DNA of 64,000 nt from Mytilus californianus (Eukaryota): assembly GCF_021869535.1 (NCBI RefSeq), contig NW_026262712.1, forward strand, positions 4,588,001-4,652,000, written 5' to 3'. Below the pieces are notes generated by a model. It made no database searches. It was not told the DNA's origin and saw only the letters and a program-made list of their open reading frames with translations. The position numbers were made by a program, and so were the translations under genes. Shown here piece by piece: positions 3 to 40,522 of the stretch. Each line of letters begins with the position of its first letter. The first letter of the stretch is position 1.

Positions 3-119
3 CTTGGATGTCAAAATACCAGCCCAGAAAGAAACTACTGCTGGAGTTTATACGTCCAAGAATTAGGCAGCTATTTAGAAATATACATCGGGATCAGTGT
101 GACGTGTATTGTTTGTCAG
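3..119 (+). CDS. Gene A exon: repeat 1, end of large extracellular loop and TM4
   Basis: AG at 1-2; LGCQNTSPERNYCWSLYVQELGSYLEIYIGISVTCIVCQ|gtattt; same 117-nt length as, and homologous to, gene B 44504-44620. Confidence 0.85.
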
Positions 120-3100
120 GTATTTATCAATACAATGTACAGCTTTTAAAAATGCAATTTTTAAGTGACCATTTAAAATGATTTACGTAGCGATAAAATC
201 TTAAGCAATGATAAAAGTATTTTACAAGTTCAATTCTAACGGAGCACGTTTACTCTTCCAGCCCACCTTAGATCACACTCAGTGATAGTGGGGCTCGTGT
301 TTCTAATTTGTTTTGTTTTCTATGCAGTGTTTTTTTTTCAAATTGTTTGTTGTTTAGTGGTTTTCATTTTTTTGACATGGCGTTGTCAGTTTAAAGTTTT
401 TAATATTCCCTTGGTATCCTCTACCTCTTTTGTTAGTTGTATTGTATTGCCTATTTGGTGAAGTTCGTGTTGTTTAGTTTTTAGTTTTCCATGTTGTGTT
501 TTATATACTGTCATTTGTCTTTGATCGTTTTTCTTTTCTTGTCATAGCAATTAATAGATTACCTAGGTATGGCAAAACCTTTCGGAATTTTGGGTCCTCA
601 ATGCTCCTCACTTTCGCCATTTTATTTTGCCTTTTTAACACTTTTAATTCGAGCGTCACTGATGAGTCTTGTAAACGAAACGCACGTTTTGCGTACAACA
701 TTTTATTACCGGTATCTTTGAAGTGTTTATTATCAGTTCGCTTTCGACTTAAGAGTTTAATATCACTTTGGTATCCATTGCATTCTTAATAACAATTATA
801 AAAAACCAAAAGACAAAAACATATAATAACTTATTAATTACATAAACCAGACGGACAAATATAGGAAAGAACAAAATAAACACAGGAGAGTAATATCAAA
901 TAATGAAAAACAACACGCTATAAGTTCCATGCATTCAAAGCGCTTTTCTAGATTTACATTCAAGGTAGTCTTTCTTTTAATCCAAACTTTTTGTCCGATT
1001 CTATAAAGTTAACTGTTTATAGAAGTCTAAGATAAAGTTACATTTAAGTTATCGTTGTGTTCATATAAGTTGTAAGATATTTCAATTTGAGATTAAATGA
1101 CATGTCCTTAGTGAGATTGAATAATGTGATATCAACGATGTGGTGAAATAACTTAATCAGATAAGATGTTTTTAGTTATTGTAATATTACTATTATAGAT
1201 ATGTTCAATAGTTGCAGCCGAATACATATTCCGTAAACTAGAATTTAAAGAAAAGAAACCAAGCATTTCAGAGAATAAGTATTACCTATTGTTGAGTTTA
1301 AAACATGGTATATTACGAAGTTTGATGATCTTCATAAAGGATAATTGGAGCAGGTAAAATATAGCATTGTTTCAATCGGGCAATGCATTTGTCAGTTAAT
1401 TATAGTAATCTAGTTAGTGTAGAATAACAGGATATTTTATTAGATATAACATTTTATAAGTAACTATCGGTGTCATATCTTATTTGTAAAAAAATATTAA
1501 CATTTTCATACTTTTTTAGCAAAAGACGACAAAACGTATAATGCTAATCAAAAACCTTTCAAAACTCTGAGGTTTTATTCGACAAGTTGGACAAAATTGA
1601 GATTAAGAATAAAGGCTGTTAACGTTAATGAAAATTTAACTTAGTATTTGATAACACCATTGAAGAAACATTAATTGTCGAAATGCGCATTTGGTGCAGT
1701 AACATTAGTACCGTTATATTATTAAACTATTTTTCGTTCCAGGTCAAAAGTTGTATTTGCATCGGTCATACTTAAAATAAGCTCACTTGTAAGTAATGGT
1801 ATATATGAACTAGCTGTCATCAAACAATGAAATCAACACGTTATAAATTTTTTGCGTCTGAAGCGCTTATTTAGATTGACCTTCATCGGGAACGCTCAAA
1901 GCCGAATATTGAAAGCCAAGGATGAATAAGAACCGAAACAGTTAAAGAGCGATATAGCCAAAAAGGGCATAAACAAAAATCGATTTAAGGCCAACTTTGC
2001 TTTAAGGAGTTAAAGCCCCTACTTTCTATAAACCGACAATTTTAGAAAGGTTTGTTATAAATGATGTCAAAATCGAAATACTGATTTTTTAGCTGATGAT
2101 ACACTCGGGATCTGAAAGTCCACCAACAGAGGTACAGACCCAGTGCTGTAAAAAAAGAAAAAAACACATGATAAATGTCATGCGCCTGAGGTCCTTTTCT
2201 GGATTTACCTTTACCAGGAATGCTCCAATAACTTTGCGACTTTCCCATAATATTCATCATTCGTAGTAGAAATGTAAATGACATCACAATTTTGCTTACT
2301 TGATTACGTATTTTTTCATCACGTTTATATCTTGCTGGCGTTATTATAGAATTGTAAGTCTTTCACAATGTGATGTGGCATCAAATTGCTTCAATGTTAA
2401 TTATAAATTTCGCCTCGGTCTTTAAATAAATCTATAAGAAGTATCTACTGATACGCACAAATCTGAAACTTAATACACCTTAGTATGCCATTTAATGCTG
2501 CAACAGATACAAAAAGAAAAAGGAAATAGAAAAGAAAAGCAAATTCCACTTTAGTTCTACGCTCAATAATATAATACAAAAATAAAAAAGATAATGTATA
2601 CTTGCCAATGAAATAACTCTCCACCAGAGACAACATGGCCATACAGCCTCTACCAATGAGCAAAAACAATATTGCATATCTAACTATAATTCCCCGAAAT
2701 GACAAATGTAAAACAGTTTAAAATAAAAAAAAAAAAAAGAGAACGGCCAGATTTATGTACAAAACAATGAACGAAAAATAAATATGATACAAAGCAACAA
2801 ACGAAAACCACTGAATTACAGGCTCATGACTTGGGACAGGCACATACAGAATTTGGCGAGGATACATTAGTTTGCTGGCGATAAACCTTGTCCCCAACAT
2901 TGAACCTAAACTTAGTTCATATATTTTAGGTAGCAGGTCTTGGGCTTCTTGGACTAGGATTAACTCTAATAGGAGACGTTTTTATTAGTGATGGCTCTCT
3001 TAGACATATATTTTATAAGATGCAGTTTTACCATTACTATTTCTATGATATACTAGTGGGTCTAGCTGCAGCATCGGTTGTCATTGGAATATGTACTTTG

Positions 3101-6100
3101 TTGTTGGCAGTTCTTGGCTTAGTTGGATCCTGGAGAAAATCGCAACGCTTTCTTATTACGGTACGTAGATAACAAACAAAAAGATATTTGATAATGATTG
3201 ACAAATCGTACGATTGATGGCTTCAAATTTCTAACTGTAAAAAATGTCACACAACTCCATATAAAACCTACAAAAATTTGTACGTTTTGGAATACTTATA
3301 TAGAATATACCTCTCCGGTAAAATACCACCGGATAATGTTGACACCATTTTAAACCTCGTTTTAACAATTGTAATGCATAAAAATTCTGTCTTTTTCGCT
3401 TTTGTTGGTTGGTGTTTCAACAGAAGAAAAATCCAATTCTCTTGCAATATGCATTCAAACAAAAAATTCTAATAAAAATACAGATAGATATATATTGGAG
3501 ACCCAGGTGCATTAATTTATTTCCCTGTACAACTCTAATACATGCACGATATTTCTGAGGTCTCAAATTTGTTTTCAAAGGCATGTTTATATTATTATGT
3601 TTTTCCCTGCTTTGTACTCAATTTATGTGCACTTGGCAGCAAATTAGGAATGACAGATTTTCAAAGTTAAGGTCTACCCCAAAAAAAAAAAAGAAACATA
3701 GAACATAGTTCTTCAGTTATTTTTTTCCTGTCTGTTGTGTTTTATATCCCGAAAATGATTTCTGTTTGTCATTAAAAATACCTTTTTATTCAAAATTCAA
3801 GCTCTTAAAGAATCGATTTTATTTTTACAACTATCAGATTCTCAGCACAATACTAAAGGTCTGGCGCGAACAACTTTATATTCAAATTAACATAATTTGA
3901 AAATATGTGATGTAGGACATAATACTCACTCGATGACTTTCATTTGTTGTAATAGTAATTAATTAGTTTAATTGTAAATTATCTGAAGATGTAAACAAAA
4001 TTAACGATCTGCATAGTGTGTGTTTCATTCTTGTTTAGTCTGAAATATACCGTGAGATGTTAAGTTAGACATTTTAATTTTTGTCTTTGCGAAATAAGTC
4101 ATCATTCCTTTGAATTACATCACTTTAACCATATTTTCTCACTTCATTGAACATGTTGAAACCTTTCATTCTAGAGCTCTGTTCTGTCTTTTGCTTTGCA
4201 TATACCAAGAATTATTGCAGTTGTATTATGGATAGTTTTTATTGAAGAGGTAAGCAATAGTATTTCTATCTTTTTATTGTTTAGTAAAAAGTAGATTTAC
4301 GGAAAGCCATACTTGACCCTATGATTGAGTATATTACAACTAAAAAACAACAATACAAATTTCACATTGAATTTGTACTATTAGTGCAAAATATCTTCTT
4401 TTGTCTATGTTTATATGTTCCGTAATTCATGTACGATTTTAGCATGCTTTATATTAAGACCCAATTTTTGGAGTCTATGATTTCAATATAAACATTGACA
4501 CATTATGGCATATTTCGAAATGTAGGTTGCGGCAATACGTCCTGAACATAAAATTCAAATCTATCTTAGGTCAATTTTGCCTGAATGAGTGTTTAACTGG
4601 CATTAAAATATATTAGTGACCTAAATGATATGAACAGATTGCTCGAATAATAATTTTATTTTGCTTTCTAACATTTACCCTTCTGAGCTTGATGTTTTTT
4701 ATCTTGAACAATGTGCTTCACATTTTAGTTCAAATAAGGATCCTACTGCTTTTGACTTATAATATCAGTATTATTATACCATGTACTTGTGATTTAGAAT
4801 ATTTGAATATGACATACAACCTTTTGTCGTGTATATTTGCTCCATTTGATGGTTTTACTAGGATTTATGGATACAGCAAACTAATAAAAAAATCAGCTAT
4901 TCGTTTTGTCAAGAAAGTGTAGGATTTGTAACAACCATTGTTGCCCTATCAAAATAGTAACAGCGATATCTGTCATCCTTATAATAAAGTTTTATTGATA
5001 AATGAAAACATCACGTTATAAATTTCAATGCGTAAAAACGGCATTTCAAGTCTAACAATTTTGGTTAACAAATATTTCAACCATACCAAAATGGTGGAAC
5101 AAACAGTAAACCTTTCGGTATATATTCTATTTAATATAGAAATATTCTGCAAAAATTTGTCCTTAAAACGTAACATAACTTCCTTTGCAGATCAACGATG
5201 GTATGAAATTTCAGTTATGGTTACAACAATTAGGATATTTTTATGGAGGCAACGGAAATGAAATCACGGGAAAGTGGAATGACATGATTATGACTGTAAG
5301 ACATATTACACATAAACATGGTTATTATGAACCTTTTTTTTTTAGATATTCTTGTGTACTGACATTTAAAATTTGTGAGATCAATGATAATGTACGTGAG
5401 ACTAGATACGTGTTGCTTTTTTTTTTATCTATCAAGAAACATGCGTATACATTTTGTACTTCAGATGGAACATAAATATAAAGGAAAGATTATCAGAATA
5501 AGTTGCAAATTGTATGGCAGATGATCTCTACGATTTAGGCTAATGCAAAGACAAATTGAAAGACAAGATTATTTCTTATTTGTCATATGACGGATAAAAC
5601 CGAAAAAAAAGATAACATCATCGAAATTTTGGTAATTTTCAAAGGCGTTTGAAGATGTTTCAATACATGAAGACTAAAATTAAACTACGAACGTACCAAT
5701 TATCAATAAAACATCAATTGAATACATATCAATTGCTAAGATAAAATGCAGTGACATATACTGTATATTAAGTAATAGTAAGGGTTGTGGCTAATCCTGT
5801 TCAAATGCAAACATATATGAAATCAATAACAATGGACGTCACAGAATAAGGCATGACTACATGATATTATGTTCTATGAATATGTTTTCAGCTGCAGTGT
5901 TGTGGTGTCAATTATTACTCCGAAACACATACGACCCAGGGAATACAGTTCTGTTGTAAAAATGCTCATCCCAGAATACTAGACAAAGAAGATCCAAACA
6001 CAAATTCATATAGTGAAATTTTCAATTATTTTGGTGGCTGTGGTGGGTACAAAACAGATGTAAGCCTGTTAAACACTTGATAATAAATCAGTTGCTTAAA

Positions 6101-9100
6101 ATCTGTTTACTATAACCTTATTGCTACACATTTAACAGAAAGGTCGCGGTCAAGTGTAACCACATTGGTTATGAGTAAGCTTGTCAAAAACAGGACGTAA
6201 TTGTACAGTCATAGATTTTAATACATCAGCATGAATAAACATAAATTTGAGATAGCTAACGTTATGTGTCGTTTGACCAAAAATGATAAAACAAAAATCC
6301 GGAATAAAATATTGCATACGCTTCTGTATCCACACGCACAAAACATGTTAATTCAAAAACCCATCTATTTTATCAACCCAAAATGTAAAAAAAATTCAAT
6401 ATTGGAATACATAACCGGCCTTAATAATTATCTACTCTTACAAAAATGACTTGCAAAGACAAACAACAAAGTCGATTGACACATACATCGTAGTTAAAAA
6501 TGTACAGTTATAATATATCTTTCTGTGAGAAGAAAAGAATGTATAAACAATCTTAACCATTGCATGTCTATCTGTATATCGTAGAAGTAAAAAACCTGAT
6601 AACTAATAAATATACAATTAACCTGATCAAGAAAACGAATAGTTATATAATTCTCTAGCTACTACAGGAAGCTATAGCTTTCAGTTTGAAATGTTTTCTC
6701 AAAAATGAAAAAAATAAAACTGCTGCTACCACTCTAGTAACAGAATATTTAAAAATATGTTTAAACGTTAAAAAAAAATTCCTCAAGAAATTTAAGTTTA
6801 ATTTGTACATTTTATAAAAAACAGTTGTATTCAAAATAAAGCAATAGATAAAATTAGTTGGTATAAATACTGTTATGGTACAAGTACGTTTTGAACATAT
6901 ATAAGTCTTTACTTTAAGACATGTGCAGAAGTAATATTGGAAAAGACTGAGATGTTTGTTGGATGGTTTCTTACGATCTTGTTGCTGCAAATTGTTTTAG
7001 AGGTATATAAATATAATGTAATATATTTTTTGTTTGTTTTTGGGGTGTCAAACTATGTAAGTTGATATATTCGAAGCATATGTAAAAGTAAAAAAAATAT
7101 ATCAAATAAACAGAAAAAAACAACATACAAACCATAAGTAAATAAAGAAAAAAATAAAAATTGATATTGAAAAAAATACATCAAGGATATATCATTAGCA
7201 ACTTTATATATATATTTACCCACAACTTATTTGTAATGTTTCTGATGATTCATTTCTATTATGAAGTATTAAAAAAAATATGTGATTACTTAATCGGCGC
7301 ACCTGGTTATATATTTCGAGGGGTACTTTTAAATTTTCAATTGATGCATCTCAGTGAATCATTCTACAAAGTTGCATATATATTGTTTGCCTTAGATCAT
7401 CGGTGGCCTGTTTGTGAACAAGGAATATTCAGATATACTGTCGACGGAAAAACCAGACAGCTCAACAGGAGATGAAATGAATACAAAGTCTGTAATATTT
7501 AGAAAAATTTTCAGAGGAATGAAATCTTTCTTTTTAAGTAACTGGAAAAGGTAATTGAACAAATAAGTAAATGCTATTTTATTTTTTTTTTAGGTATATG
7601 GTTAATTATAGTTGTACATGACGAATAACGCGTATTATTTATATATTTAACTCTGTAAAACAGAAGCATAGATATAATTTCGTACCATTATTATTTTGTT
7701 ATTACTAAAAAGAAAGTGTGAGCAAGTATCAACATAATCTATTTAGATATTTGATGTATACTCAGTTTTTAATACATGTCATCTGCTAATTTTTTGTTAA
7801 TATAAATTAGCGATGAATTCAACAAAGATGCAGAAGCTCATTTACACAGGCGCTCTTATGCTTTTAATGCCAATTTTACCTATCTTGTCTGTTTGTTTTG
7901 TTCACATATTGTTGTTAATATAATGGCATTTTATGCGACTGTCATGCAAGTGAGAGGTTTAGATACCTTTGAAACAAGGTTCAATCCACCCTTTTCTACT
8001 AAAGAAAATGCCTGTTCCAAGTCAGGAAGATGACAGTTGTTGTCCATTCGTTTAATGTGTTTGAGATTTTGATTTTGCCATTTGATTAGACACTTTCTGA
8101 TTTAAATTTTCCACGGAGTTTTGGTATTTTTTTTATTTTACATTTTTTGTAGTTTATGTCTTAGTGATTCAGATATGTACCCTCTAGTAAAAATGACCTA
8201 ACAAAATTGACCACCTTCCCCAAGAGCAGATAAACAAATAATAAAAAATAAACATAAAATATCAATCAATACAATGACTGTATTTTTTTCTGAACCAGAA
8301 GCACATTTTGACAATTATATTTCATTAGTGTTGCTCGATGCAAAAGTATTTAAAAATCCAAATATACGAGCTTAGAAACAAAAAATAGACAAACAATATA
8401 GCCATAGCCAGACAATGAATAAGAGCTTTGCATGAGTGAGATATTCCTTAATGTTGAGCAATTGTCAATAGTCCACAATCGGAGTTATATATAACACTCT
8501 AGTATAAAGTCATCCATATCTATTTAATGAAAATCATGTATAATGATTTTAATCTACGACAAATCATGTTTTTAATATAAAACTTTACTTACATTATAGG
8601 TCTAAATTAACCTTAGTACGCTTCACATCTCTCGGAACTATATTTGTAAGTATATTTTTTATCTTATCAAGCTGTATATGTTAATTATGGAATCATTGGT
8701 GTTTCTTGTTTTTTCAATTTTTCAGTATTCTTAGAATTTTTAGGAAGGGATATTGACTTATACAATATATAAGGTATATCTCATTTTAGACAATAACCAA
8801 CCGTACAACAGAATGATCATCTACGAATGCTTAATCACATTACGAGATAATAACGTCTTTAATTAGATAATTTCGTAAGATACTAATTCTACCCCTTCAA
8901 AAGAGTAGACAACTTTAGATAAATTAACTAAACCCTTACGGTTCGTTTTCTGACGTTAAATGTAGCAGAATAAACATTAGATTGACAAAGTTAAAAATAA
9001 CAAATACTATACATCAGATTGCGTTTTGCATCGGGTTGTGCCGAAGATATTTGAGTTCAATCCTTTAATCAATATTTGCCTTGCATGACCACGTATAATC

Positions 9101-12100
9101 CAAGGAAATGAGCCACAAAATGTTTACAAATTGAAAATTACTGAGTAAAGAATAAATGAAATTAGACAAATGCAAACATTTCTCCAACTGTTCATGATAT
9201 GTGTGTGAGCTAAACGCTGTTAAACGAGATTGTCTAAAAAAGAACTAAGTAACGTTGCATGTAATTTTACAAAGTCTTTATTGTTGTTTGTCAAATAACT
9301 ACTATGAATATTTGTTTCAATCTTACAGATGTGTAGCCTTGTGGTGCTTTGTCTAGCCATCAATATAAGATACGACAAAGTTTTTGGAAACTCGGATATA
9401 CAAGACATATTCTCAAGAATCAATGTTACCGACCATACCTTCACAAGGGCCGTCAACATATTTTCCATTGTGACTGTCACCTTTTCGTCTGTATCTATAT
9501 CAGTTGTTATATTTTCCATCTTTGTTATGGCTTTACCAAAATGGAAATCAGTTCTGAATATTGTGGTGAGACTTTTAATATTTGAATGCTGTGAAATAAT
9601 GTTTGACCGTTATTTTGTTTCAGGATCATAATTCATTGAGGTTTAAAGCATTGGCGTATCTTGTATAGGATAACTTTACAGAAAATGTACTTTATCTATT
9701 ATGCAAATGAATGTTCTGTTCATGATAAACGCTTATTTGAAATATCGATAAAACGCTAAACACTGATAGTTATCCCTAGGTCAATGATAACAAATTTCAA
9801 GTAGAGTTACGGGTTTAAATCATGATCTGATGAAGTGTTCTCGTATTTACTTGATATCTATAAAATTGGAGATTTTGTTCACGATATCAAAAAAAAAAAG
9901 AATATGTAATTACTTGCTAGAAGTTGTATGCGTTTTTTTCCAATTGTGTGTTTGCTTGCACTCCTTATGTACTTTGAATAACCAAAAATTAAAAAAAAAG
10001 ACAATTAATAAACTGTTGAAAACTATAGTTGGTATAATTTAATGGGACAATATATATAGCTGAAAACAAAGTCCATGAAAATCTAAAGTAATTATGGTAA
10101 TAGCACAAATATATCTAGAATATAGAAATGTATAAAATTAATTCATTTATGAAGCCAAAACCTCAACAATATAATAACAAAACCCACATTCAAATCAAGT
10201 TAAGCATACCATTTTTAATTTATAGACTGCAGGGTTATTGAGTGCTGTGGTAGTTGCCAACATTGTACAAATAGGATTATGGGGAAAGTTCTTGGCAGGA
10301 GTAAGTTGACCAATAAGATGATGTATGTATTGATAATGTCTTTGAAAGAGGCGTACGTGTTACATAGTTTTATTATGTGTTGGTAACGTTAGTGAAACAA
10401 AATTAATGATCTTTGCTTATATGTTAACTTAACTAATTACAGTCAAAGCTTTTAGAAAAAAAAAAATCATAATTCTATAGCATTACAATTATAGAAAAAG
10501 ACATCAATTGTATTACATATCAACACAATAGTGCTAGCAAGTGATAATCTCGGGCACGGAACAGTAAACAACAGTAGCATCAAAATAAATTAAATATACT
10601 AGGCTTATAACTTTGTACAACAGACGTCCGCTCTGTCTACTGTAGAGTCTTCAATTGCACACGAATCAAACAATATGAAGTTGAAATATAAACAAACTAA
10701 AGTGAACAGTAATCACCATAATATTTAAATATGTAACGAAAAAAATGTTTTCTAGCCATATAAGTGTATACAATTCCCATTTGGAGTCTTCTATTTTATA
10801 GATAACATTTCTGAAGTCCAAATATAAAATTCAAATGTAATCATGATTACGACTTTGAGGTTTGCAAATGAAATCGACACTTGGAGAGCATACTTTTGTT
10901 TTTGTTTGTTTTCTATGTCCTTTTGTTATTAATTTTAATTCGACATCTTTATTTATGTATTACAAGGAGAGACGGAATAAACTAAAAGCATATCTGAACT
11001 CACGAGTTATAGTCAAAACGACAAACAACCAAACAATACAGTCTACAACATTTAAAAAATACAGCAATACAAACTAAAGACTGAGCAACACAAACAACAC
11101 AAGAAAATCTGGAGATGATATGTACTATAATGATATATAATAAAAGATTATGGAGAAAATCGTCAAAACAATTTTGCTGTCATCATCACTGAATATTTGA
11201 ATTTGGTTAAAGGTTTCATCAGAGCTAGAAAATGAACTAAGGGCACAATTTGTTAGTCAAGATGGCGGCTATCAGTACTCTCAGAATTCAGCAACATATG
11301 ACACGTCATTATCACTCTCTTGGAACACGCTTTTTGTACAGGTATGACTTAGGAAGATGATTTAAAAATCTTAAGATGTAAAGAAAATATTTGTTTTTAG
11401 TCAATAAACCAATAGTTTAATAATGAATAAACAAGAGTGACAAAGACATCTGGCGTATTTTAGTCATTCAATTTGTAAGAACTACTTTTCTTTATTCAAT
11501 GAAATTTGCTGTACAAAATATTAAACATAACTATAGAATTTACAATTATATGTATCTACATGGCATAGATAGTTTTTCTGTTTCGAAAAAAATATATACT
11601 TTTATGGGGGTATATAAAAACCGTACCAAATTTTTAAACATGGCAGCAAAAAACCAAAGAAAAATAAAAGTGAAGTTCGTTATCGCTTTATATAAAAAGT
11701 ATGTCTCTGTCCTTAATCTGTCTAAATAACTTCATTAAAACTCATTAGAAACTATGATCTTACAATGTACTGTAAACCAACTTTTTTTCGCGGATACTTC
11801 AATTTGCATGTAGCACTGTCTAACCCACTATACGCCGATTACACATCACGATTTTCAAATTCACTTTATGTAATGCAATTAGACAAAACAATGTTAGATA
11901 AGGAAAGATCCTAGTTTAAATTTTTATAATGATTTATATTCGCGTGATTTTACCACTCGCGAAAATCGTTAAAATTAATTGCTCGCAAGTTGGTTTAAAG
12001 TATTGGAAAGGACTGCAAAATATTTGGAAAAGTACGCAATTTAAAATATTGTGAGTGATTTTAAGAAACAGTGCAATCATGGATATTATTTTTCAACCTT

Positions 12101-14669
12101 GCACTTATAGGCAGAATGCTGTGGAGTAGGATCCTTGATAGAATCATCGTTTACCTCCACCAAGTGGTACTCGTCTGGGGATAGATCTGGTAATCGAATC
12201 CCAGTACAGTGTTGTTTATCTCAGTCCGATGTATTCCCGTACTCTACTAGGACAGATAGCCATTGTACATCTTCTATGCTAGATGGATACTTTTACTCAC
12301 AGGTTAGTACTGTTTTCTTTCATTTTTGTGGGAAACAATTTTCGTGAATTGAGGGAAAAATGCGTATTCGTGGATAATTGATTTATTGCTAATTACAAGC
12401 CTATAGAACATTTGTAATTCAATGAATGTTTTAATTCATGGTTCATCTTTACGCATAAACTCCAAGAAAATTAGTATCTCCCGAATGATAATAAATATAA
12501 TTGAAATTTTCTAATAATTGATGTGAACGGTGTCTTGTTTTGTTTACAAAATAATAGCTTTATTCAGGACAATTTCAAACAAATGAAGCAGAACGACACA
12601 ACGAAAAGTAAAAGAACCGTACGAAACTTTACAATTACTATAATGTTAATTATAATGATAATATTCAATTGGAATTCTTATTTTAATTAAACAATTATTT
12701 ACTAAAAGTGATACATAATTTTAAAATCGGCTATAAGTGTGAGGTTCTCAATGAATGACACCGTATGCAAATATGTGTTCAAAAATATTTTGACAATAAT
12801 AGAGTTTAAATTTTAAGCGAAAAGATACATATCATTTTGAAAACAAATAGTAATTCAATCGGAATGAAAACACAATTTACGTGAGATCTCCCCTAAATTT
12901 TGGTGGGGTTCGTTTTGCTTAGTCTTTAGTTTTCTGTGTTGTGTTTTGTGTACTTTTGTGTGTGTGTTGGCATTTATTCTTTTTTAGCCATGACGTTGTC
13001 ACATTGTAGTCGACTTGAATTTTAATTTCCCTCTGGTGTCTTTCGCCTCTCTTTTAATGTCTTTCTTTCATTTAACAAGTTGCTAAATAGAATCAGTGTC
13101 CGCTACATCAAGTAATATGAAAAAATAAAATAATAACAATATATCTTTCAGTCTTGTGATGATGCAGTAGAAAAAAGAATAAAGACATACAGCATAATCT
13201 TCTTTGTTTTCATGGCGATCACCATTTTAACAGAGGTATGTATGGTACTATCAAAAATATTTAAGTCAGATGATGTGATCAAAAGTTCTCTAAATTATTT
13301 CGTAGTTTGATATGGACTTACCATGATATATCAAGTAATTATTCCAATTAACAACACATTTTTGATGCGCTAACGATATCTATATTCAATATAATAAATA
13401 ATTTTGTATGAAACTGGTATTTAGCTAAAAGCTACAGTATATATCAGATTCTACATTAGCACCAACTCAAACAGTTTGAATGGCATGCTAATTAAAAAAA
13501 ATGACTTACATATCCCCGTCTTTAACCAACAATACGGTATTATCCACGTTTAATGGTCTCACATTTTACGGCTGTTATCTGTTCTTTGACCGGGTTGTTG
13601 TCTCTTTGACATGTTCCCCATTTCCATTCTCAATTTTATCATTATGAGCAGGTAACACTTCGGGTAGATAACGAATAGTGCTTCGAGTTTTTTTAATTGT
13701 TCGATGAAACAAATTGGTTTCATTAGTTGTTCAATTGGCATTCAAACATACAGCGTCACAATTATAAAACTAAAATTAAATCAGATTTACATGACAATGT
13801 TAACTATTTTTCGCAATGCAACTGCTGAACTCGTCTTAGCCCTGATCAATACTGTGCCGAAACAAGAGGCAAACACAATAAAGTATGTGAGGAATACACA
13901 TAACAAATGACGTGAAGAATACATATCACATGTATATAAATACATCAATTGCGTTTTTGTGATGTTTGGTTACTGTCATGTTTAATCCACACCTCATTTT
14001 ATTAATGTTTCGCAATTGTATTAAGCCATCTAAATTTCAAGTTTGGAGAATGAAATTGTTATCAATACAGGAATGAACAATGTTATAACAGTTTCTGTAA
14101 ATGTAAGAAATGTGTCATTTGGTACTTATTATAGTGACTATGACTTCACGGGGTAATTTGAAATGAAACTTTAACTCAGAAAATCAAATTTCTAATCATT
14201 TTTTCAGATATGTTGCATTATGATGACTGTATTCAATGTTATAAGATTGAAGAAATTACCCCTGGTTTTTAAAGCTGGTGACGACACAAAAGAAATCATT
14301 AGAGAAAAGGAGAAAAGTATGCTGGAACAATCAATTGGGGATGAAGCAAATAAATCCAGAAACAAAAAAATACAAAAGGATAAGCCAGAAAAAATATCAC
14401 AACTCAAGAAGTCGAAGTCGAGAGGAGCATTTGATTTACAAAAGAAAGAAAGTACAACTATTCAGGAAAATCATGAAGACAAAATTGAATTACAACCTGT
14501 AAAACCGATTGGAATTGAAAACAAAAATAATGCCGCTATCGAAAATAAGCAATTAGACACAGTCTCTGGGACAAAAGTAAATAATGTTGCGGAAGATGAA
14601 ACAGTGGCTGAAAAAGATACCACAGTTAGGGACACCAAGATCGATGATGCAACGGACACAACCAACTAG
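3..14669 (+). CDS. Gene A: triple-tetraspanin (concatenated) membrane protein, 5'-incomplete, 16 visible coding exons
   Basis: Exons 3-119, 1199-1353, 1743-1788, 2930-3160, 4175-4249, 5191-5295, 5892-6059, 6919-7002, 7396-7550, 8600-8645, 9329-9565, 10226-10300, 11213-11341, 12111-12302, 13152-13235, 14208-14669. All have AG/GT ends and compatible phases, total 2361 nt, with no internal stop. Two complete CCG-type tetraspanin modules plus the TM4 end of a third. Confidence 0.88.
237..440 (+). repeat. Abundant interspersed repeat matching the 54770-55075 UTR; other copies at about 10900-11120(-), 12880-13060, 29160-29360, 29695-29910(-), 30860-30980, 35898-36116(-), 40040-40280
   Basis: Shared motifs ggggttcgtgttgct, tttagttttctatg, ggcgttgtcagttt, ggtatctttcg. 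Confidence 0.75.
545..720 (+). mobile_element. Retrozyme/Penelope-associated fragment with decayed type I hammerhead (family 1)
   Basis: gcgtca CTGATGA gtct-tgt-aaac GAAA cgcacg tt ttgcgt at 651-695; stem II and cleavage triplet mutated. Confidence 0.65.
1199..1353 (+). CDS. Gene A exon: linker between repeats 1 and 2
   Basis: tatag|ICSIVAAEYIFRKLEFKEKKPSISENKYYLLLSLKHGILRSLMIFIKDNWS(R)|gtaaaa; 155 nt, phase 0 to 2. Confidence 0.85.
1654..1697 (+). ncRNA. Decayed minimal type I hammerhead motif (family 3)
   Basis: acacca TTGAAGA aaca-ttaat-tgtc GAAA tgcgca tt tggtgc; palindromic stem III; core C-to-T change. Confidence 0.5.
1743..1788 (+). CDS. Gene A exon: repeat 2, start of TM1
   Basis: ttccag|(R)SKVVFASVILKISSL|gtaagt; 46 nt. 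Confidence 0.85.
1830..2230 (-). mobile_element. Retrozyme-like monomer (about 330 bp) bounded by two decayed hammerheads (family 2)
   Basis: Two direct copies of aacac.t.ataa..t..tgcg.c.ga.g.cctt.t.t.gatt.acctt...c.ggaa.gctc at 1836-1897 and 2163-2225; a third copy lies at 911-968. Confidence 0.6.
2930..3160 (+). CDS. Gene A exon: repeat 2, TM1-small loop-TM2
   Basis: ttttag|VAGLGLLGLGLTLIGD...IGICTLLLAVLGLVGSWRKSQRFLIT|gtacgt; 231 nt. Confidence 0.9.
4175..4249 (+). CDS. Gene A exon: repeat 2, TM3
   Basis: ctag|SSVLSFALHIPRIIAVVLWIVFIEE|gtaagc; 75 nt. Confidence 0.85.
5191..5295 (+). CDS. Gene A exon: repeat 2, large loop part 1
   Basis: ttgcag|INDGMKFQLWLQQLGYFYGGNGNEITGKWNDMIMT|gtaaga. 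Confidence 0.88.
5892..6059 (+). CDS. Gene A exon: repeat 2, CCG exon
   Basis: tttcag|LQCCGVNYYSETHTTQGIQFCCKNAH...YFGGCGGYKTD|gtaagc. Confidence 0.92.
6919..7002 (+). CDS. Gene A exon: repeat 2, TM4
   Basis: tttaag|TCAEVILEKTEMFVGWFLTILLLQIVLE|gtatat; 84 nt. Confidence 0.9.
7396..7550 (+). CDS. Gene A exon: linker between repeats 2 and 3
   Basis: ccttag|IIGGLFVNKEYSDILSTEKPDSSTGDEMNTKSVIFRKIFRGMKSFFLSNWK(R)|gtaatt; 155 nt with no stop, phase 0 to 2. Confidence 0.88.
8600..8645 (+). CDS. Gene A exon: repeat 3, start of TM1
   Basis: tatag|(R)SKLTLVRFTSLGTIF|gtaagt; 46 nt. Confidence 0.85.
9329..9565 (+). CDS. Gene A exon: repeat 3, TM1-small loop-TM2
   Basis: ttacag|MCSLVVLCLAINIRYDKVFGNSDIQ...ALPKWKSVLNIV|gtgaga; 237 nt. 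Confidence 0.9.
10226..10300 (+). CDS. Gene A exon: repeat 3, TM3
   Basis: tatag|TAGLLSAVVVANIVQIGLWGKFLAG|gtaagt; 75 nt. Confidence 0.88.
11213..11341 (+). CDS. Gene A exon: repeat 3, large loop part 1
   Basis: taaag|VSSELENELRAQFVSQDGGYQYSQNSATYDTSLSLSWNTLFVQ|gtatga. Confidence 0.88.
12111..12302 (+). CDS. Gene A exon: repeat 3, CCG exon
   Basis: ttatag|AECCGVGSLIESSFTSTKWYSSGDRSGNRIPVQCCLSQSDVFPYSTRTDSHCTSSMLDGYFYSQ|gttagt. Confidence 0.92.
13152..13235 (+). CDS. Gene A exon: repeat 3, TM4
   Basis: tttcag|SCDDAVEKRIKTYSIIFFVFMAITILTE|gtatgt; 84 nt. Confidence 0.9.
14208..14669 (+). CDS. Gene A terminal exon: end of TM4 plus about 140-aa charged cytoplasmic tail
   Basis: tttcag|ICCIMMTVFNVIRLKKLPL...DDATDTTN*; matches ORF 14220-14669. 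Confidence 0.9.
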   Translation: MCCIMMTVFNVIRLKKLPLVFKAGDDTKEIIREKEKSMLEQSIGDEANKSRNKKIQKDKPEKISQLKKSKSRGAFDLQKKESTTIQENHEDKIELQPVKPIGIENKNNAAIENKQLDTVSGTKVNNVAEDETVAEKDTTVRDTKIDDATDTTN

Positions 14670-20500: not shown

Positions 20501-20698
20501 GACGTTGATTTATATTTATATTTGCAAATGATGTCCTTGTACTTTGGCACTGGCATTAACATACGGATATTGTTTTGATTAAATTTAGCTTTTATAAACT
20601 TTTGTAAATCAATGTAAATTAAAAAATAATATATATACTTCGAAAGTATTTTTTATATATTAGTTTGTGATACTATTTGAAACTAACAATCAATGTAC

Positions 20699-20782
20699 CT
20701 CTGCTACTATAATGATCGAGCTGAATACCATGAAAGGTATACTGTATTCTTGCAATTGGTTTTTGATAGCAGTATCACATCC
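20699..20782 (-). pseudogene. Gene B exon: repeat 3, TM4
   Basis: ctacag|GCDTAIKNQLQEYSIPFMVFSSIIIVAE|gtacat; 84 nt. Confidence 0.9.
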
Positions 20783-21443
20783 CTGTAGCAAACAAGAAAT
20801 GAATGAATATAGATTAATATGAAATACATAATTAGATATAATGTATAAGTAGAAATATTCTTTTATAAGATATTTACGACAATTTGTTTTTAATAATGAG
20901 AAATACTTTCTGGTTTCATTGAGGAAGCAAATAGATTAGTACATGATTTATAAATCGCACGCTATATTTTTAATCACATTCAGATCCAATACATTTCATG
21001 TTAAATGTATTTATTTGTGTATATTTAAAAGACCGCCGTTCAATTTGGATTTTTGATATGTAAGCTCCAAAATTAACATCCCTCCTGTTAAATGGAATCA
21101 TACTTCTGGGACACCGACTCTGCTATTTTTGACATTATTGCCCCTTATTACATCAGTAATGTTAACGTTGAGAAATAAATCCTTAAATTATCTGCTAGCA
21201 GTTCTAAGTCAGGTTTCAATTTTACTCTATATTCACAACCTTGTTTTTAAATGCAAACACACATATTTTATAGTTATTTACTCATGTTACTTTTGTTTGA
21301 TTTATGAATTAGGAATAAATAGCAACATCAAATATTCTATCTAAAGCAGAGTCCTACTGTAAATCTATTTTCATACAGTAAACATGGTAAATTGAATTTA
21401 TCTTTAAACATTGAATTTGAAAAAAAAAACAAAACCCACGTAC

Positions 21444-21640
21444 CTGTGTATAGTATGAACCATGTTAAAGTGAGTTGGTACAATTTTTATCTTCTCTACT
21501 GGTATAAGGATACAGTACCGTACGGATTTACAACATTGTACTGGTATCTGTTGGTTAGCTGTTGAACCTCGGCGACTTGAATACCAGATTGATTCATTTA
21601 ACGACACTATATTGAAAGCTCCTATTCCACAGCATTTTGC
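21444..21640 (-). pseudogene. Gene B exon: repeat 3, CCG exon with frameshift and stop
   Basis: AKCCGIGAFNIVSLNESIWYSSRRGSTANQQIPVQCCKS/-1/..YPYTSREDKNCTNSL*HGSYYTQ|gtacgt; 197 nt where 198 is expected. Confidence 0.85.
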
Positions 21641-21732
21641 CTGACGTGTGAGAATGTATTAATTTATAAACACTGGAAGAACAATTTTCAATATATCTAG
21701 TGGACTAGTGGTAATAGTGCATGAGTTACTTG

Positions 21733-21852
21733 TGTAGTAGAAATGATTGATAAGCTGTCCTGTCTAATAGAAATGATTGACAAGGTGGTAGTTCAGTGGA
21801 AATGATGACTAAGGTATCCTGTGTACAGTAGAAAGATGGATAGGGTGTCCTG
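21733..21852. repeat. Degenerate about 30-bp minisatellite, 4 copies
   Basis: gtagaaatgattgataag.tgtcctgt-like units. Confidence 0.65.
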
Positions 21853-22724
21853 TTTTGTTGTATTATAACTCAAAATATGTATCGGCAGTAATTTGGAATG
21901 ATACTTGTATTTTTAAACCCTTTCTGCAATAATGATTCATTGATATATTCTTCATTTTTCAATATGTAAATAGGTTATTGTTGCAAACGGTTAGAAAATT
22001 AATCCATTATTTTATTCAGACGTCCTAGATATATATCGACATTTTAATAATACGTCAATTCTGATTGGATTACAAGCTACCTCATGTTCTTAAGTAACCG
22101 GTGTTCAATGACAACAAATTCAATCAAGAATTTCTTGGATTTGAATACTATCTTATCACTGATTCTTCTAAAAAGATGTTTTAAAGAATTTCTAAGGAAA
22201 ATAATTTAAGCATGAAGAATTCACAATTTGACAAGAAACTGGGAGGCTATTCACATGAACGTCCTCCCGGAAATGTCATAATATATAAAAAGGTTACGCA
22301 CAAAGAACTTCCTTTAAAAAAATGTCACTTTCAACAGAAACTATCTCAACTCATTGTATATTGCCAGTCAACCTGGATTTGATGAGGACATTACTTTTTA
22401 ATGTAAGCCTTTGTACCAACAACTGAGCTTATTGCTTGCTATTATGTACACTTTCAATGCATCGTTTCATCTTAAAACAGCACTAGATATAATAGTTGTA
22501 AAAGAATGTAGGCATCGTTATACGTACATTTTTGTATAGGTCGCACAGCTAAGGAACATTTGATATCGCTTTATATTTCTCGAGCTGTTTCAGTTCAAGA
22601 CATTATCTATACATGGTGGAATGAGATGAAACAGAATTTGCATTTCTACAGCAACATGAGAGAAAAGTAATCAATATAGCAGCAAACAAATCTCACCTGT
22701 TTAACACGTATATAAACATAATGC

Positions 22725-22842
22725 CCTTGGATGAAGATGTAAGGGTAGATTAACATACGAGTGAAAAAAAATATCACCTGACACGAATTCGAGGTGATAT
22801 TTTTTCCCCAAGTGTTAATCACCCTAACACCTTCATCCAAGG
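22725..22842. repeat. 118-bp near-perfect palindrome (fold-back MITE remnant)
   Basis: ccttggatgaag...aaaaaaatatcacct-loop-aggtgatattttttt...cttcatccaagg. Confidence 0.8.
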
Positions 22843-23995
22843 ACAGAATGTTTTTTTATTACACTGAATGCCGTATGATTCAAGTGTGCACTATGTTTAC
22901 TTATTAGACAGAAAATTGAAAAAGAAAATAAAGTCATAAATTAAAATAAAATGTAGTTTACAAATAACAAGAACAAAACATCAAATAGTAACAAATTTAA
23001 CAATCTTCATCCTGATGGTTTGTTGTTTTCTGGTGACGGAAATGATGTAGAAATAAGAATCAGTAAACCTTTGCCAAAGCGGGTGTTAATTGTTCCGGAT
23101 CAGCAAACTTCGGGCTCAGCGGGTGATAATTTTAGGCATTAACACCAGTTGCTAACATTATCACATGTTGCTATGGGTGGACGGGGCTTATGAAAGTTAG
23201 TAAAATTTAACAAAAGCCGCGTGCCCAATAAAATGAATGGATAATATAAAAAAATGCATAAAGTATAATTAAACATTTTACATCTAAATTTCTTTTCGAA
23301 ACATAAATACTGCAAATTCAATCATGCATCAAAATGAAGCTTATTTAGTTATCATCATTTGTTTGGCATAAAAACAAAAAAACTGCTTATAACAAGTATG
23401 AAATGAAAGATGACATATTTAAGTAAAAGGTCATTCAATAAAACAGACAACACCAGGTTGTCGGTGTTTAAATTTCGTAAATCAATTATGAATATATCCT
23501 TTTAAGGAAACCTTGGCCTAATTTGGCACTTCCTTTTGACATTTCTGGTTTTTCAGTTTCAGAGCTTTTCGATTTGTTAAATGATTTTTGTTCTTTACTT
23601 GTTTTGATTTTATCTCCACTTGAGTTTTTCGTAGATAAAATTTGCGTCTAATGTACGTTATTACAAGGGTTTGTATCTTTAATGAATTCTTATTCAAATA
23701 AAAGAAACAACAGCTGATGAACTTGCGTGAACTCCAAGTAGAACAAGAAATAATTCGTTGACAGATTAAAGCTTTCCTCCAATGCGTCTTACAGTCGTCA
23801 TCCGAATTGTATGTTTTCATCGGATTTTTTTTTATTGAAGTGTTTTATAGTAATCTTTGTCAGTCCATTTTAGTGTGTTACTTGAAAAGGGTTGTGTAAC
23901 CTCCTAAATAGTTTTTTTTCGAGAGACCACGATACAAATTTGAAATTAGGACAAAAAAGATGCAGAGTTACTGTACACTAATTTAATTTCTAGGA

Positions 23996-24262
23996 TTTGA
24001 TTTGATTTGATTTTTGGTGTTTTAACGCCACTTTTAAGCACCGCTTTTGGGCTATTTCCTGGCGGCCAGTTTTTATTGGTGGAGGAAGCCGGAGTGCCCG
24101 GAGAAAACCACCGACCTTCGATAGGAAAACTGACAATCCTAGTCAATTAAGATTAGAGTCGAGTGCACTCGCACGAGCGGGGTTCGAACTCACAACCTCA
24201 GTGTTGACTGGCTAGTGATTACAGTAGTAATTACTTAGACCACTCGGCCACCGAGGCCCCCC
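23996..24262 (-). mobile_element. Full-length tRNA-derived SINE with V-domain-like core and 13-bp target-site duplication
   Basis: 5' GGGGCCTCGGTGGCCGAGTGG (A box), GAGTTCGAACC (B box), GGTTTTCTCCGGGCACTCCGGCTTCCTCCACC core, (AAATC)n tail; TSD TTAATTTCTAGGA at 23983-23995 and 24263-24275. Confidence 0.9.
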
Positions 24263-24537
24263 TTAATTTCTAGGAAGATTGATGTTTGTTTTCAGCCCTT
24301 TCAGTCAAGTTTGCGGCAATTTATATTCGCTATTTCCTTTGTTCTTTCATATAAATATTTGCAACTATTTATATTCTTTATATTTCTACACTCCATAATG
24401 TCGCTTGCCAATAAAAGATTGGTTACAGTACTTCATTTTGTTTCATTGAAATAAACTTTTAATTATAACATGACGAATCAAAAGACGAATAAGCGCGATA
24501 CATGTATATCAATAAAAAGTGTAATGTTTTTAATTAC

Positions 24538-24935
24538 CTTTATGAAAAGTGTGTTCCATTTAAGGTGGTACCCAACACCTTGACTAATATTAATTTGGCT
24601 CGTTTAATTTTCATGAAATTTTGAAAAAATGTTTACTTTGACCCTTTGACAAAAATATAAAAATTTCAAAAAATTTGAACCAACCACTTTATCAGAAAGA
24701 TTTCATTGGTTATTTAGCAGTTTGACAAACACTAATTTTGATCATTGAGAAGCTTAATATTTCCTTAACAATACAACGTAATTAAAACGTTTAGCTGATT
24801 TTTACAGAGTTATCTCCCTGTAGTGTTAGGTACCACCTTAACAGAATATAATTCATAAGATGGTCCTGATGCATCAGAATACTCATAATCATCGTGTATG
24901 ATATGTAGAAGTTTTTCTTCTAGTGCTTGATTTAT
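24538..24935 (-). pseudogene. Gene B exon: repeat 3, large loop part 1, split by a MITE
   Basis: ttacag|INQALEEKLLHIIHDDYEYSDASGPSYELYSV[insertion]KWNTLFIK|gtaatt; removing 278 nt (element plus one TTAA) restores a 120-nt in-frame exon. Confidence 0.88.
24564..24837. mobile_element. 274-bp MITE with TTAA target duplication (Kolobok-like)
   Basis: TIR GGTGGTACC(C/T)AACAC, 15 bp with 1 mismatch; TTAA at 24560-24563 and 24838-24841. Confidence 0.88.
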
Positions 24936-26224
24936 CTGTAAAGCGGAATCAAATACTTAGTAAACAAGAACTGTAGATCAATTCGTTGTATAGCAAGAAC
25001 ACAATCAGTTGTATCAGTTTCAATTAAAAAAACAGAAAAAAGATGTGTCGTATCTGAAGGTATATCCAGAAAATCGATTTAGACGTATTCAATTTTTAAT
25101 GAGTTGTTCTCATTTTGTTGGATATTTGCAAATTACACGACAAGTAAAAAAAAAACAAAACAAATAAATGACAAAAAATATTCAATTGTCAACAAAATGT
25201 CCATCGCATATCAGGCTCTCAATCTCATCGATTCGTCATAAAATGTTACAGAGACTACATGTATGAAAGATATCCCATGTAAACTTAGATGCGACCCGTG
25301 TGAACTTATTGATCCTTTGAATAAGTGTTTTTCTCAGATATTATCAATTCTTCACTGTAATAAGATCTTTAATATTGTTTTATCAGTACAAACATTGCTT
25401 TTCTTATCAAAACATTTAGCCAAATAGTATTGCTATACAGCTATTAACATTTATTGACCTACATTCTCTTGCTACTTATGTTGTGGCATACGTTGTGTCG
25501 ATCGGAGAAGTCAAGCCTTTTTCGACTTATTTGTATAGTTAAAACTTTGTTCTTATTTTGAGCTGTTACACAAGAATAATAGTTAAGGGTAGAGTAAACT
25601 TATACGTAATTTGAATCAATGATGACAATTGATCTCATCCACATCTCCATTTTTTAATTATGCATTTTTCAGTATAATTCTTCCAGCCCGTCCTCCTCTG
25701 TTTTATAGTGCTTTAGCAATTTTTAAAATGTGTTATGTTTTGTGAATCATTGTTTTTATTTTAGTCGTTCTTCCATTTTACAATCCTACCGCATAATGTT
25801 ATTATGGTTTTAATTCATCAACATCTTCTCCTCTTTTTAAACTGGATTTTCAGTGTTAACCCATCGTCCTTATCTTGATAAGTGTAATGTAAGTAAGCTT
25901 ACCTTTTGTATTTGTAAATGTTTATACCCGCAAGAGTGCAACGGTATATTGTGTTAACCTCAATGTATGAACATTAATAAAAATGATATTGATAATGACA
26001 CTTTCTACATGATTTTTTATATTCTGCATTATCATTAAAATGATAGCAATATACCTGTTGCATGTATTGAATATATCTATTTTACAAAACATACCCTGAA
26101 TAAACGACAATCTGAGTAGAAAGAGGAGAAAGATAACAAATGGACAATAAAGTATTAAGGTACTGACATCAATGAAGTTCCATACAACGATAAATCCTAT
26201 GTCATTCAAAGAAACGTAACTCAC

Positions 26225-26299
26225 GTCAGCTGTAACATATGCCACTATGCCTAACTGGATAATGCTTGCAATGACGAGAATACACCACAAACATAAACT
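26225..26299 (-). pseudogene. Gene B exon: repeat 3, TM3
   Basis: ttatag|SLCLWCILVIASIIQLGIVAYVTAD|gtgagt; 75 nt. Confidence 0.88.
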
Positions 26300-26720
26300 C
26301 TATAACATAAATGTATAAACATTATTCATAACAGTGCAATGAAATGTTTTTTTTTGTAAGAGGAAATATAAAATATTTAATAAGTGTTCTAGTGACTTCC
26401 AAATTTCCGTGCGACACAGATGAGTTTTGATTTCTCTTAGCACTTACTTTTCATTTTTATAACATGTATCAATGTAATTAATGGATAATAAGATATGTAT
26501 GTTTTCAATCACTTTTTGTATTTGATAGCATTGTTTTTGTATTCAATGGGCGCAGTTTTTTTTATGAAATCATGAATCGAACATGATAAGGTTTGTTTAT
26601 GAAAAAATCGATACATACCTGATTAAGTTAATTCTATTTTAATTTTTTGATAAACCTTTTAATTAATGGTTGCACTCCGTCTTATTTGGTTTTCGTTTAT
26701 TTCGGCCAACGGTTTTATTC

Positions 26721-28188
26721 GGCCATGTTCACACCAAACGCTGCGTACTATAAATTTGTTTACTATTAGTTGCATGTAATGAACACTGGTTTCACATTAC
26801 ATTTTTTTCTCATCTGTACATCGTTTTTAATTACCTGTACATAGAAAATTGTTCACACCAGTAAACAACATGTACACGTAATTTACCTGTACATTACATA
26901 GAATTTGATTTTAGAAAAACTGTAAACGTTTGTATCAGTTTGGCGTAGACACATTAATTTTTTTTTATTTGTAAATTTTTTTTGGGGGGTGAGGGGGAGG
27001 GGGGGGGGTGGGGGGGGGGGGTGAAGATGAATTGTTTAAATTATTATTTTTAAGAAAAAATATATTTGTTCCAGTAGGGAAGCGAGGAAAATTGTTTTTT
27101 ATTCCTTGAAAGAAGGAGCGGGGAAGGGAGGGAGGGGATGGGGGGTTTATCAACATCGATTTTAAAAATGTTCCTGTATGATATTGAAAAAAAGATTATT
27201 TTTTTTTATCAAAGTAATAAAAAAAATGGTTTATCCCACGAAGATAAATGGTCGGTATCTTAAGTAAATTGTTCTATTGTTTTGGAAAACTTTGAGAGTT
27301 CTAAAGATGTCACTATTTACGCAGGTTAAAACTGCGTTACTATGGGAGACAAAGAATTTTGAAAACTATTGATTAATTGCTAAATGTCCAGTGGCAAATA
27401 TTTCATGCATGTTAAAGACGAGAACAAATTCACAATGAATACATTCATGTAAAAGAGGTCGTCCGAGATGAAGACCGGGGAAATTTGAACTGCCATTGGA
27501 AAATTAGTTTATATTGGATAGGGACAGAAATTTTTTGTTTTAACATCCCGCACAGCCAAACGGACGCTTAACTTTGTAAAGGGTTTTACGGCCGATCGGA
27601 AGAAGATCTTAGTGACCATAGTTCTATTCCCCACTGAGTCACACATAAGGTGATTTGGAAATGAAAAGTCTTGACTGGTACTAACTGTTAAAATAAACCT
27701 TGTCCAAGACATGATGGAAATGAATATTTTGTCCTACAAAATGCAGGACTTTGTAAGAAATAGTTGTGTAAAAAAAGTGAAAAATAATGTTCGCGCTAAA
27801 TACATACGCCGTACTATCAACTAATGTAAAAATGAATATAATATCAGCATAAAAGAACCTCCCACTGAAAATCAAATGGTCTACTAAGGCTATTATTTTT
27901 TTATTTTTTGTCATATACATAGGTAAATAACTTATTTCATAATATTATTTTAAACTTTTTAATTCAATACATTCTTAAATATTCACAATAAAATCCACAT
28001 TCTTAATATCTAGTTTTGTGAAAACTTAACCCACACTAGGCCTACATTGACTATCGACTGCATGTAGTTAAAACCTGTTTTAAACTACATGTAAACATTG
28101 ATTTTTATCAACGGGAACGTAATACAGTTTAGTTTAAGTGTAGACAGCCCTTACACCACATCGCGTTTAGCTCAATGTGAACACGGCC
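26721..28188. mobile_element. Probable PIF/Harbinger-like non-autonomous element carrying nested insertions
   Basis: Inverted ends GGCC(A/G)TGTTCACA; right flank TTA, left flank degenerate; contains a G-rich tract and a SINE tail (27375-27505). Confidence 0.45.
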
Positions 28189-28372
28189 TTAGTTGAAATG
28201 CTTTAGTTTTTTATTTATTTCGGTGTTTTCTATATTAAGAACTTTATGTTTTGGGGTTTGGCTATTGGTGAATGGAGCACGGTGACCTTTGGTTTATTTC
28301 AAATTCAAGTGGTTTCTGTTGGAAAATTGACTCATCTCCTTATTTCGTATACTAATTCATTTCAATACTTAC

Positions 28373-28612
28373 TGAAATCGTTAAAGGGTATCTCCATTTT
28401 CCACATGCCATGAATACAATAATAGAATGTATGCTGGATAATATGCTTATCGTAGAGAACGTCACAACGATAATAGAAAAATGGTCAATTGCTGATTTGA
28501 AGGAAATGTTTCCAAAATATATTTCAGAAAATAGTTTTTGTATTTCTCCATTTCCGAATACTGAATCATAGCGAATATTGATAGCAAATCCAAGCAATCC
28601 AAAATTGAATAT
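28373..28612 (-). pseudogene. Gene B exon: repeat 3, TM1-small loop-TM2
   Basis: ttacag|IFNFGLLGFAINIRYDSVFGNGEIQ...ACGKWRYPLTIS|gtaagt; 240 nt. Confidence 0.9.

Positions 28613-40485: not shown

Positions 40486-40488
<3 letters not shown>

Positions 40489-40521: not shown

Positions 40522-40522
<1 letters not shown>

Follow-up and report, generated by a model that had tools for sequence, protein, structure and literature searches.

The stretch of DNA considered here, referred to throughout as the window, comprises 64,000 nucleotides (nt) of Mytilus californianus (NCBI RefSeq assembly GCF_021869535.1, contig NW_026262712.1, positions 4,588,001 to 4,652,000 of the forward strand; it corresponds to record JAKFGE010000006.1 from ~4,588,001), and most of the exons of the gene that forms the subject of this report, gene A, lie at positions 3-14669 of its + strand. 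Gene A is most probably a genuine single gene that encodes three serial tetraspanin-derived modules of four transmembrane (TM) segments each, making a protein of 12 TM segments and 953 amino acids (aa) with a long tail rich in Lys and Glu (K/E-rich) that is predicted to be disordered, and it would belong to a tandemly arranged family that is restricted to Mytilus and in which the tripartite layout is ancestral. The case for fusion rests on evolution, because no spliced transcript was retrieved. Judged by comparison between species, the exons that link the modules are coding and under purifying selection, and the tripartite layout is conserved and under selection across Mytilus.

Exon structure and reading frame of gene A

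Stop-free segments of the + strand were surveyed over positions 1-15500 and then compared with the remainder of the window, which brought out both a series of tetraspanin-like exons and an inverted paralogue (paralogue B) on the minus strand. Enumeration of exons bounded by AG and GT gave 16 exons between positions 3 and 14669, which when spliced form a single open frame of 2361 nt and 786 aa with no internal stop and with nine hydrophobic TM peaks. A further four exons, belonging to module 1 and measuring 72, 231, 75 and 123 nt, were found in the 8.7 kilobases (kb) directly upstream of the window (L003:1928-8150); all are intact and bordered by AG/GT, and with the first of them the protein begins MAKINRSR. 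Once these are included the open reading frame (ORF) runs uninterrupted through 20 exons and 953 aa, and the full protein has 12 hydropathy peaks arranged 4+4+4. A preliminary description made from the letters of the window alone had proposed a protein of about 1000 aa with 12 TM segments, read in a single frame through exons of given lengths and phases, with two 155-nt linker exons that end in phase 2 and join a 46-nt exon starting SK; this was borne out, with the length corrected to 953 aa and the 16 exons in the window having canonical AG/GT borders. They are as follows.

3..119, + strand: end of the module 1 loop and first half of TM4, 117-nt exon
1199..1353, + strand: linker exon 1, 155 nt, phase 2 end; second half of TM4, then a basic cytoplasmic segment that includes a predicted helix, ending ..NWS(R)
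1743..1788, + strand: 46-nt exon, phase 1 in and phase 0 out, G followed by SKVVFASVILKISSL, without ATG; module 2 cytoplasmic N-terminal stub and start of TM1
2930..3160, + strand: module 2 TM1, small loop and TM2; 231 nt
4175..4249, + strand: module 2 TM3; 75 nt
5191..5295, + strand: module 2 large loop, constant part; 105 nt
5892..6059, + strand: module 2 large loop with the CCG (Cys-Cys-Gly) motif; 168 nt
6919..7002, + strand: module 2 end of loop and first half of TM4; 84 nt
7396..7550, + strand: linker exon 2, 155 nt, phase 2 end, ..NWK(R)
8600..8645, + strand: 46-nt exon, G followed by SKLTLVRFTSLGTIF, module 3 entry
9329..9565, + strand: module 3 TM1, small loop and TM2; 237 nt
10226..10300, + strand: module 3 TM3; 75 nt
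11213..11341, + strand: module 3 large loop, constant part; 129 nt
12111..12302, + strand: module 3 large loop with the CCG motif; 192 nt
13152..13235, + strand: module 3 end of loop and first half of TM4; 84 nt
14208..14669, + strand: last exon; second half of TM12, 148-aa K/E-rich tail (predicted disordered) and stop codon

Both linker exons stop two bases into a codon (..NWS-R and ..NWK-R), and the exon that follows reads G and then SK. Both 46-nt exons have a strong polypyrimidine acceptor, a perfect GTAAGT donor and no ATG, and the linker donors are CAG/GTAAAA for exon 1 and AAG/GTAATT for exon 2. Stop codons make up 6.5% of the codons in the window, giving for each linker exon a chance of ~3% that a stretch of 51 codons would be open by accident. 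Tetraspanin genes typically contain six phase-0 introns (PMC2650405). When the correspondence of introns to those of reference tetraspanins is judged by the structural element that each exon encodes, modules 2 and 3 each comprise seven exons with the full set of six phase-0 introns and module 1 retains five; gene A has no introns out of phase 0 other than the two at the joints, which are in phase 2. The intron between linker 1 and the 46-nt exon that follows it measures just 389 nt.

Conservation and selection in Mytilus

An exhaustive phmmer search of 1.84 billion representative proteins with the module-2 TM1-2 exon found five relatives, two of them long multi-module models from M. galloprovincialis, and a search with protein P0004 found 27 proteins, many of 900-1000 aa and all from Mytilus (M. 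californianus, M. galloprovincialis, M. edulis, M. coruscus and M. trossulus). Among the named hits of the exhaustive search, and of word-indexed searches with P0004 and with module 2, there was no relative from outside Mytilus. Three-module models are present, in RefSeq or in other annotations, for the first four of these species and a two-module model for M. trossulus, and the annotated orthologues of gene A in M. galloprovincialis (P0012, 942 aa) and M. edulis (P0033 and P0032), at ~88% identity, include all three modules. A divergent copy of the module-2 TM1-2 exon, in which GSLRHS replaces GSWRKS, was seen at ~60% identity in Logan run SRR26215656 (L008/P0005); its source could be a more distant mytilid, in which case it would help to date the family.

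An exact spliced mapper, with which each database protein was reproduced from its own genomic locus, revealed that one 20-exon layout maps exactly, to the base, onto gene A, P0012 and P0006, a M. californianus paralogue of 995 aa that is 50% identical. The exon lengths in the three are 72/231/75/111-123/117-120/155/46/231/75/105/168-171/84/134-155/46/237/75/126-129/192-198/84/tail. Linker 1 is 155 nt long throughout and linker 2 is 134, 152 or 155 nt long, always 2 modulo 3, and the 46-nt exons are constant in length. A maximum-likelihood tree of 41 module sequences placed module 1 in one clade (support 100/100) and module 3 in another (98/100), with very long branches separating them and small differences within each type. 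The grouping of modules by position in this tree means that the three-module order is older than both the duplication of the family and the splits between the sampled Mytilus species. A comparison of P0006 with P0004 (L004 / L001), which are presumed orthologues, gave synonymous divergence (dS) of ~1.8 or saturated for the e4 and CCG exons of module 3 and of 0.05-0.44 for the other exons; the diverged sequence of these loop exons suggests an exchange between paralogues at the scale of the exon, or a mosaic gene.

The ratio of non-synonymous to synonymous divergence (dN/dS) between gene A and its M. galloprovincialis orthologue was calculated by the Nei-Gojobori method. For linker 1 with its 46-nt exon the figure was 0.03, reflecting 18 synonymous and 3 non-synonymous changes, and for linker 2 with its 46-nt exon it was 0.18; the modules gave 0.14-0.21 and the tail 0.36. 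Exon by exon the values for gene A ranged from 0.08 to 0.44, and no positive selection was seen in its loops (omega 0.08-0.44 in every exon). The introns that flank the joints are merely 65-80% identical between gene A and the orthologue, and that in patches. Mechanical candidates for hidden first exons are present in the joint introns, none of them within a conserved block, and they were rejected. The preliminary description had considered an accidental fusion of neighbouring genes unlikely, and the view that this is one gene is upheld by the exon-for-exon layout in other Mytilus genes together with the purifying selection on the linkers. A further question is whether gene A might be a decaying or non-functional copy in the manner of paralogue B, its open frame a leftover. 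The cluster does hold a clear pseudogene, B, and several shortened models, but such a fate is hard to credit for gene A, given that 20 of its 20 exons are intact and that dN/dS against the M. galloprovincialis orthologue is 0.03-0.44 throughout.

Nature of the modules and of their joining

The gathering threshold of the Pfam Tetraspanin family (PF00335) is 32.1 bits. Module 2 passes it with 55.1 bits (P0012:255-500) and 64.1 bits (P0006:255-505), matching profile positions 6-219 of 225, and module 3 passes with 41.3 and 39.7 bits, the profile being matched over its full length; the linkers and the tail have no Pfam match. Searches of the PDB by sequence (phmmer) matched module 2 to CD53 (4e-5) and UPK1B (2e-4) and module 3 to UPK1B (6e-3), and yielded no match for module 1. 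The CCG motif is present in modules 2 and 3, each of which has six Cys in its large loop. Each of the 100 nearest ESM Atlas clusters is listed under the tetraspanin Pfam family; the three that were displayed are one-module tetraspanins 272-340 aa in length.

The large loops of modules 1, 2 and 3 comprise 74, 111 and 132 residues with 2, 6 and 6 Cys respectively and are all net negative; the N-terminus, the three TM2-TM3 loops and both linkers (+6 and +5) are net positive. Charge and hydropathy together fit the usual tetraspanin topology three times over, with the linkers predicted, from hydropathy alone, to be cytoplasmic. In the low-confidence full-length model each linker contains one predicted helix, which a hydrophobic-moment scan suggests to be amphipathic, and the 148-aa K/E-rich tail is disordered. 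For module 1 an AlphaFold2 model (predicted local distance difference test, pLDDT, 59; predicted template modelling score, pTM, 0.52) had as its top Foldseek matches in the PDB CD81 (E 0.019, TM-score 0.56), CD9 and CD53, with weak E-values of 0.02-0.16, none of them at or below 0.001. Module 1 is tetraspanin-like only.

A number of results weigh against the reading of gene A as a single gene for three tetraspanin modules. Module 1 fails the PF00335 threshold, with partial matches of 22.0 and 25.4 bits (E 1e-4 to 1e-5), and it lacks the CCG motif, having two Cys in its 74-aa large loop. The three tetraspanin modules of the preliminary description, and the three PF00335 hits expected from them, thus hold for modules 2 and 3, which lie above 32.1 bits, and not for module 1, which reaches only 22-25 bits. 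The full-length AlphaFold2 model is unreliable (pLDDT 46, pTM 0.36) and uninformative on packing between the modules. The RefSeq model of the gene itself, LOC127706054 (P0016, M. californianus, "uncharacterized protein"), which is 100% identical by BLASTP to model residues 82-786, has 705 aa and two modules and starts at the first Met within linker exon 1. Its start has probably been shortened because its first three exons went to isoform X2 (P0036) of the neighbouring LOC127706052, which in RefSeq claims the first three upstream module-1 exons of gene A. The database models P0037 (258 aa, module 1 and linker 1, RefSeq) and P0001 end by reading through a linker donor into an immediate stop. 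Finally, a search of 5.8 billion proteins with the joint-1 peptide (P0012:180-330) retrieved only single-exon genomic Logan fragments and two short RefSeq models, and no spliced fragment.

The failure of that search to yield a spliced transcript would also be expected of an annotation artefact, in which three separate neighbouring tetraspanin genes are read as one through compatible exon phases, and since tetraspanin introns are mostly in phase 0 neighbours can easily join in frame (PMC2650405). A considerable body of evidence nevertheless makes an artefact very unlikely. An ATG-bearing first exon is missing from modules 2 and 3, which open instead with a 46-nt exon that begins in phase 1 after a strong acceptor, and modules 1 and 2 have no stop once spliced. 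The linker exons are, as we read the values, more constrained than the modules (0.03 and 0.18 against 0.14-0.21), and the indels in linker 2 preserve phase. The 389-nt intron between linker 1 and its 46-nt exon is too short to accommodate a terminator, a promoter and a first exon, and there is no conserved hidden exon in the joint introns.

If gene A is accepted as a single gene, its joints may indicate how it arose. Each linker exon encodes the second half of TM4 and then a cytoplasmic C-tail, as does the last exon of an ordinary tetraspanin, and the 46-nt exon encodes the same part as the 3' part of the 72-nt first exon of module 1, namely a short cytoplasmic stub and the start of TM1. From its sequence the linker exon resembles what was once the final coding exon of the upstream unit, and the 46-nt exon appears to be what is left of the first exon of the next. 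The ancestor would have been a tandem array of three diverged tetraspanin genes, in which splicing came to link each upstream unit, from a donor where its stop codon had been, to the next unit, at an acceptor lying beyond the ATG within that unit's first exon, and the resulting read-through (conjoined) gene would then have become fixed. Reading past the linker donor gives R and then a stop at both linkers of gene A and of P0012 and at linker 1 of P0006, which is taken here as a trace of the former stop codons. The product may be a covalent hetero-trimer of tetraspanin folds of fixed 1:1:1 stoichiometry and order, with two basic linkers of ~50 aa in the cytoplasm and three different extracellular loops on display, one small and CCG-less and two with six Cys.

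These same stops may have a present use. It is possible, and compatible with a single fused gene, that the output is mixed, the fused mRNA being accompanied by proteins of one or two modules that arise from an unspliced linker donor, from intronic polyadenylation or from an internal start, so that a valency of 1, 2 or 3 is regulated; this is put forward only tentatively. P0037 and P0001 end at such stops despite the presence of module-2 exons downstream, P0016 starts inside linker 1, the starting Met of P0026 and of P0027 is encoded by the module-2 loop exon, and AATAAA sites occur in both joint introns. However, a stop after a phase-2 AG/GTAA donor is to be expected from the splice consensus alone, the linker 2 donor of P0006 is GTCT and leads to no immediate stop, AATAAA is frequent by chance at 30% guanine plus cytosine, and the short models may be incomplete annotations. 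An improbable extension of this idea is that of a programmable family of natural covalent tetraspanin hetero-trimers, in which splicing at the linker donors would set the number of modules and splicing between paralogues would swap them, giving combinatorial surface loops; the idea of module swapping draws on LOC127706052, whose isoforms X2 and X3 include exons taken from gene A and from another copy.

Comparison of the single fused gene with known systems brings out both likenesses and differences. Its modules have in common with canonical single-module tetraspanins (PF00335; CD53 6wvg, CD81 7jic/5tcx, CD9 6k4j, UPK1B 8jj5) four TM segments, a small and a large extracellular loop, net-positive cytoplasmic loops and six phase-0 intron positions, and modules 2 and 3 also resemble them in having CCG with four further Cys and in scoring above the Pfam threshold. 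Unlike them, gene A has three modules in one chain with conserved cytoplasmic linkers of ~50 aa, a motif at the end of TM2 that reads GSWRKS or PKWKS where the usual one is Cys-rich, a first module with a 74-aa, 2-Cys, CCG-less loop, and a 148-aa K/E-rich tail. In conjoined (read-through) genes, as at the joints of gene A, the donor ends the last coding exon of the upstream unit and the acceptor bypasses the downstream start codon, the joints here being the only introns not in phase 0; but whereas a conjoined gene is a minor transcript of two independent genes, the fusion in gene A would be fixed, under selection and ancestral to a family in at least five species.

Tetraspanins are thought to act by loose non-covalent association with each other and with partners, and their packing side by side is poorly defined. 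Non-covalent or disulfide-linked oligomers include peripherin-2/ROM1 tetramers, uroplakin plaques and CD9/CD81 webs. By analogy with these, gene A would set several tetraspanin folds side by side in one patch of membrane, although its sequence implies that stoichiometry and order would come from the polypeptide chain and not from assembly. If this is true, a concatenated tetraspanin maintained by selection would be evolution's own experiment in fixing the stoichiometry, order and neighbourhood of three folds, and a convenient object for structural work on the interfaces between tetraspanins. Gene A would also be a clean case in which read-through splicing has made one gene out of a tandem array and in which the joints can still be recognised, being its only introns out of phase. 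Its practical reach is so far limited, as the family appears to be confined to Mytilus.

The preliminary description had tentatively regarded the architecture as uncharacterised. Full-text searches of the literature on natural multi-module tetraspanins, on Mytilus tetraspanins and on the accession numbers found no description of it, and to that extent the view stands; the three-module architecture is, however, already among the predictions of RefSeq and UniProt, under automatic names or as uncharacterised proteins. What is rated as new is a lineage-restricted domain architecture within the tetraspanin family.

Paralogue B, neighbouring genes and repeats

Paralogue B occupies much of the remainder of the window in the opposite orientation to gene A.

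20696..51723, - strand: paralogue B, inverted relative to gene A and laid out in the same three modules, start Met at 51723
43685-43534, - strand: linker exon 1 of paralogue B (152 nt), open, phase 2
34046-33919, - strand: linker exon 2 of paralogue B (128 nt), open, phase 2

Its module-2 TM1-2 exon is cut down to the last 18 codons (38882-38829), which abut an interspersed repeat, its module-2 CCG exon has a donor that is out of phase, and its module-3 CCG exon (21640-21444) carries a frameshift and an in-frame stop. Neither a module-3 46-nt exon nor a tail exon was found, and none of the database proteins has a high-identity match to B, which is a decayed pseudogene. The preliminary description had pointed to conservation of the linkers in B as an argument for the fusion. 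Both are indeed open and in phase 2, but the remainder of B is broken, and because it is a pseudogene the support that it gives is weak; the orthologues support the same point more strongly.

The local order of the cluster is P0006, P0026, gene A, the inverted pseudogene B and LOC127706052. The first coding exon of this last paralogue (MAKINRSRITVSANIILTVSLITR) lies at 61773-61844 on the + strand, with a 100% match to P0014, and the gene continues past the end of the window. Its RefSeq isoforms P0036, P0035 and P0034 combine or omit exons as follows. Isoform X2, with its exons from gene A (L003:1928-7273), implies an intron of >60 kb spanning both gene A and B; the last three exons of isoform X3 belong to another paralogue; and the 84-nt module-2 TM4 exon is absent from isoform X4. 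Such isoforms reflect either genuine splicing from one paralogue to another or errors of mapping among tandem copies that resemble each other.

Three kinds of repeat were observed. The interspersed repeat that truncates the exon of B is present at 38885-42303 and 18348-20493 in the same orientation, is ~2-3 kb long with 71-81% identity between copies, and matches no Pfam family; part of an ORF, bearing the motif LEIKETT.TASSASLLD, lies within it. The linker-2 intron of gene A contains at 7875-8086 a short repeat, probably a small mobile element, of which there are four further copies on the opposite strand of the window (~18860-19010, 32620-32830, 58265-58475 and 58955-59160). A second short dispersed repeat occurs in introns and between genes at 12868-12985, 29187-29291, 54879-54986 and 456-530, and its translation is rich in Cys and Phe (..FWWGS.CLV.SFLCCV..).

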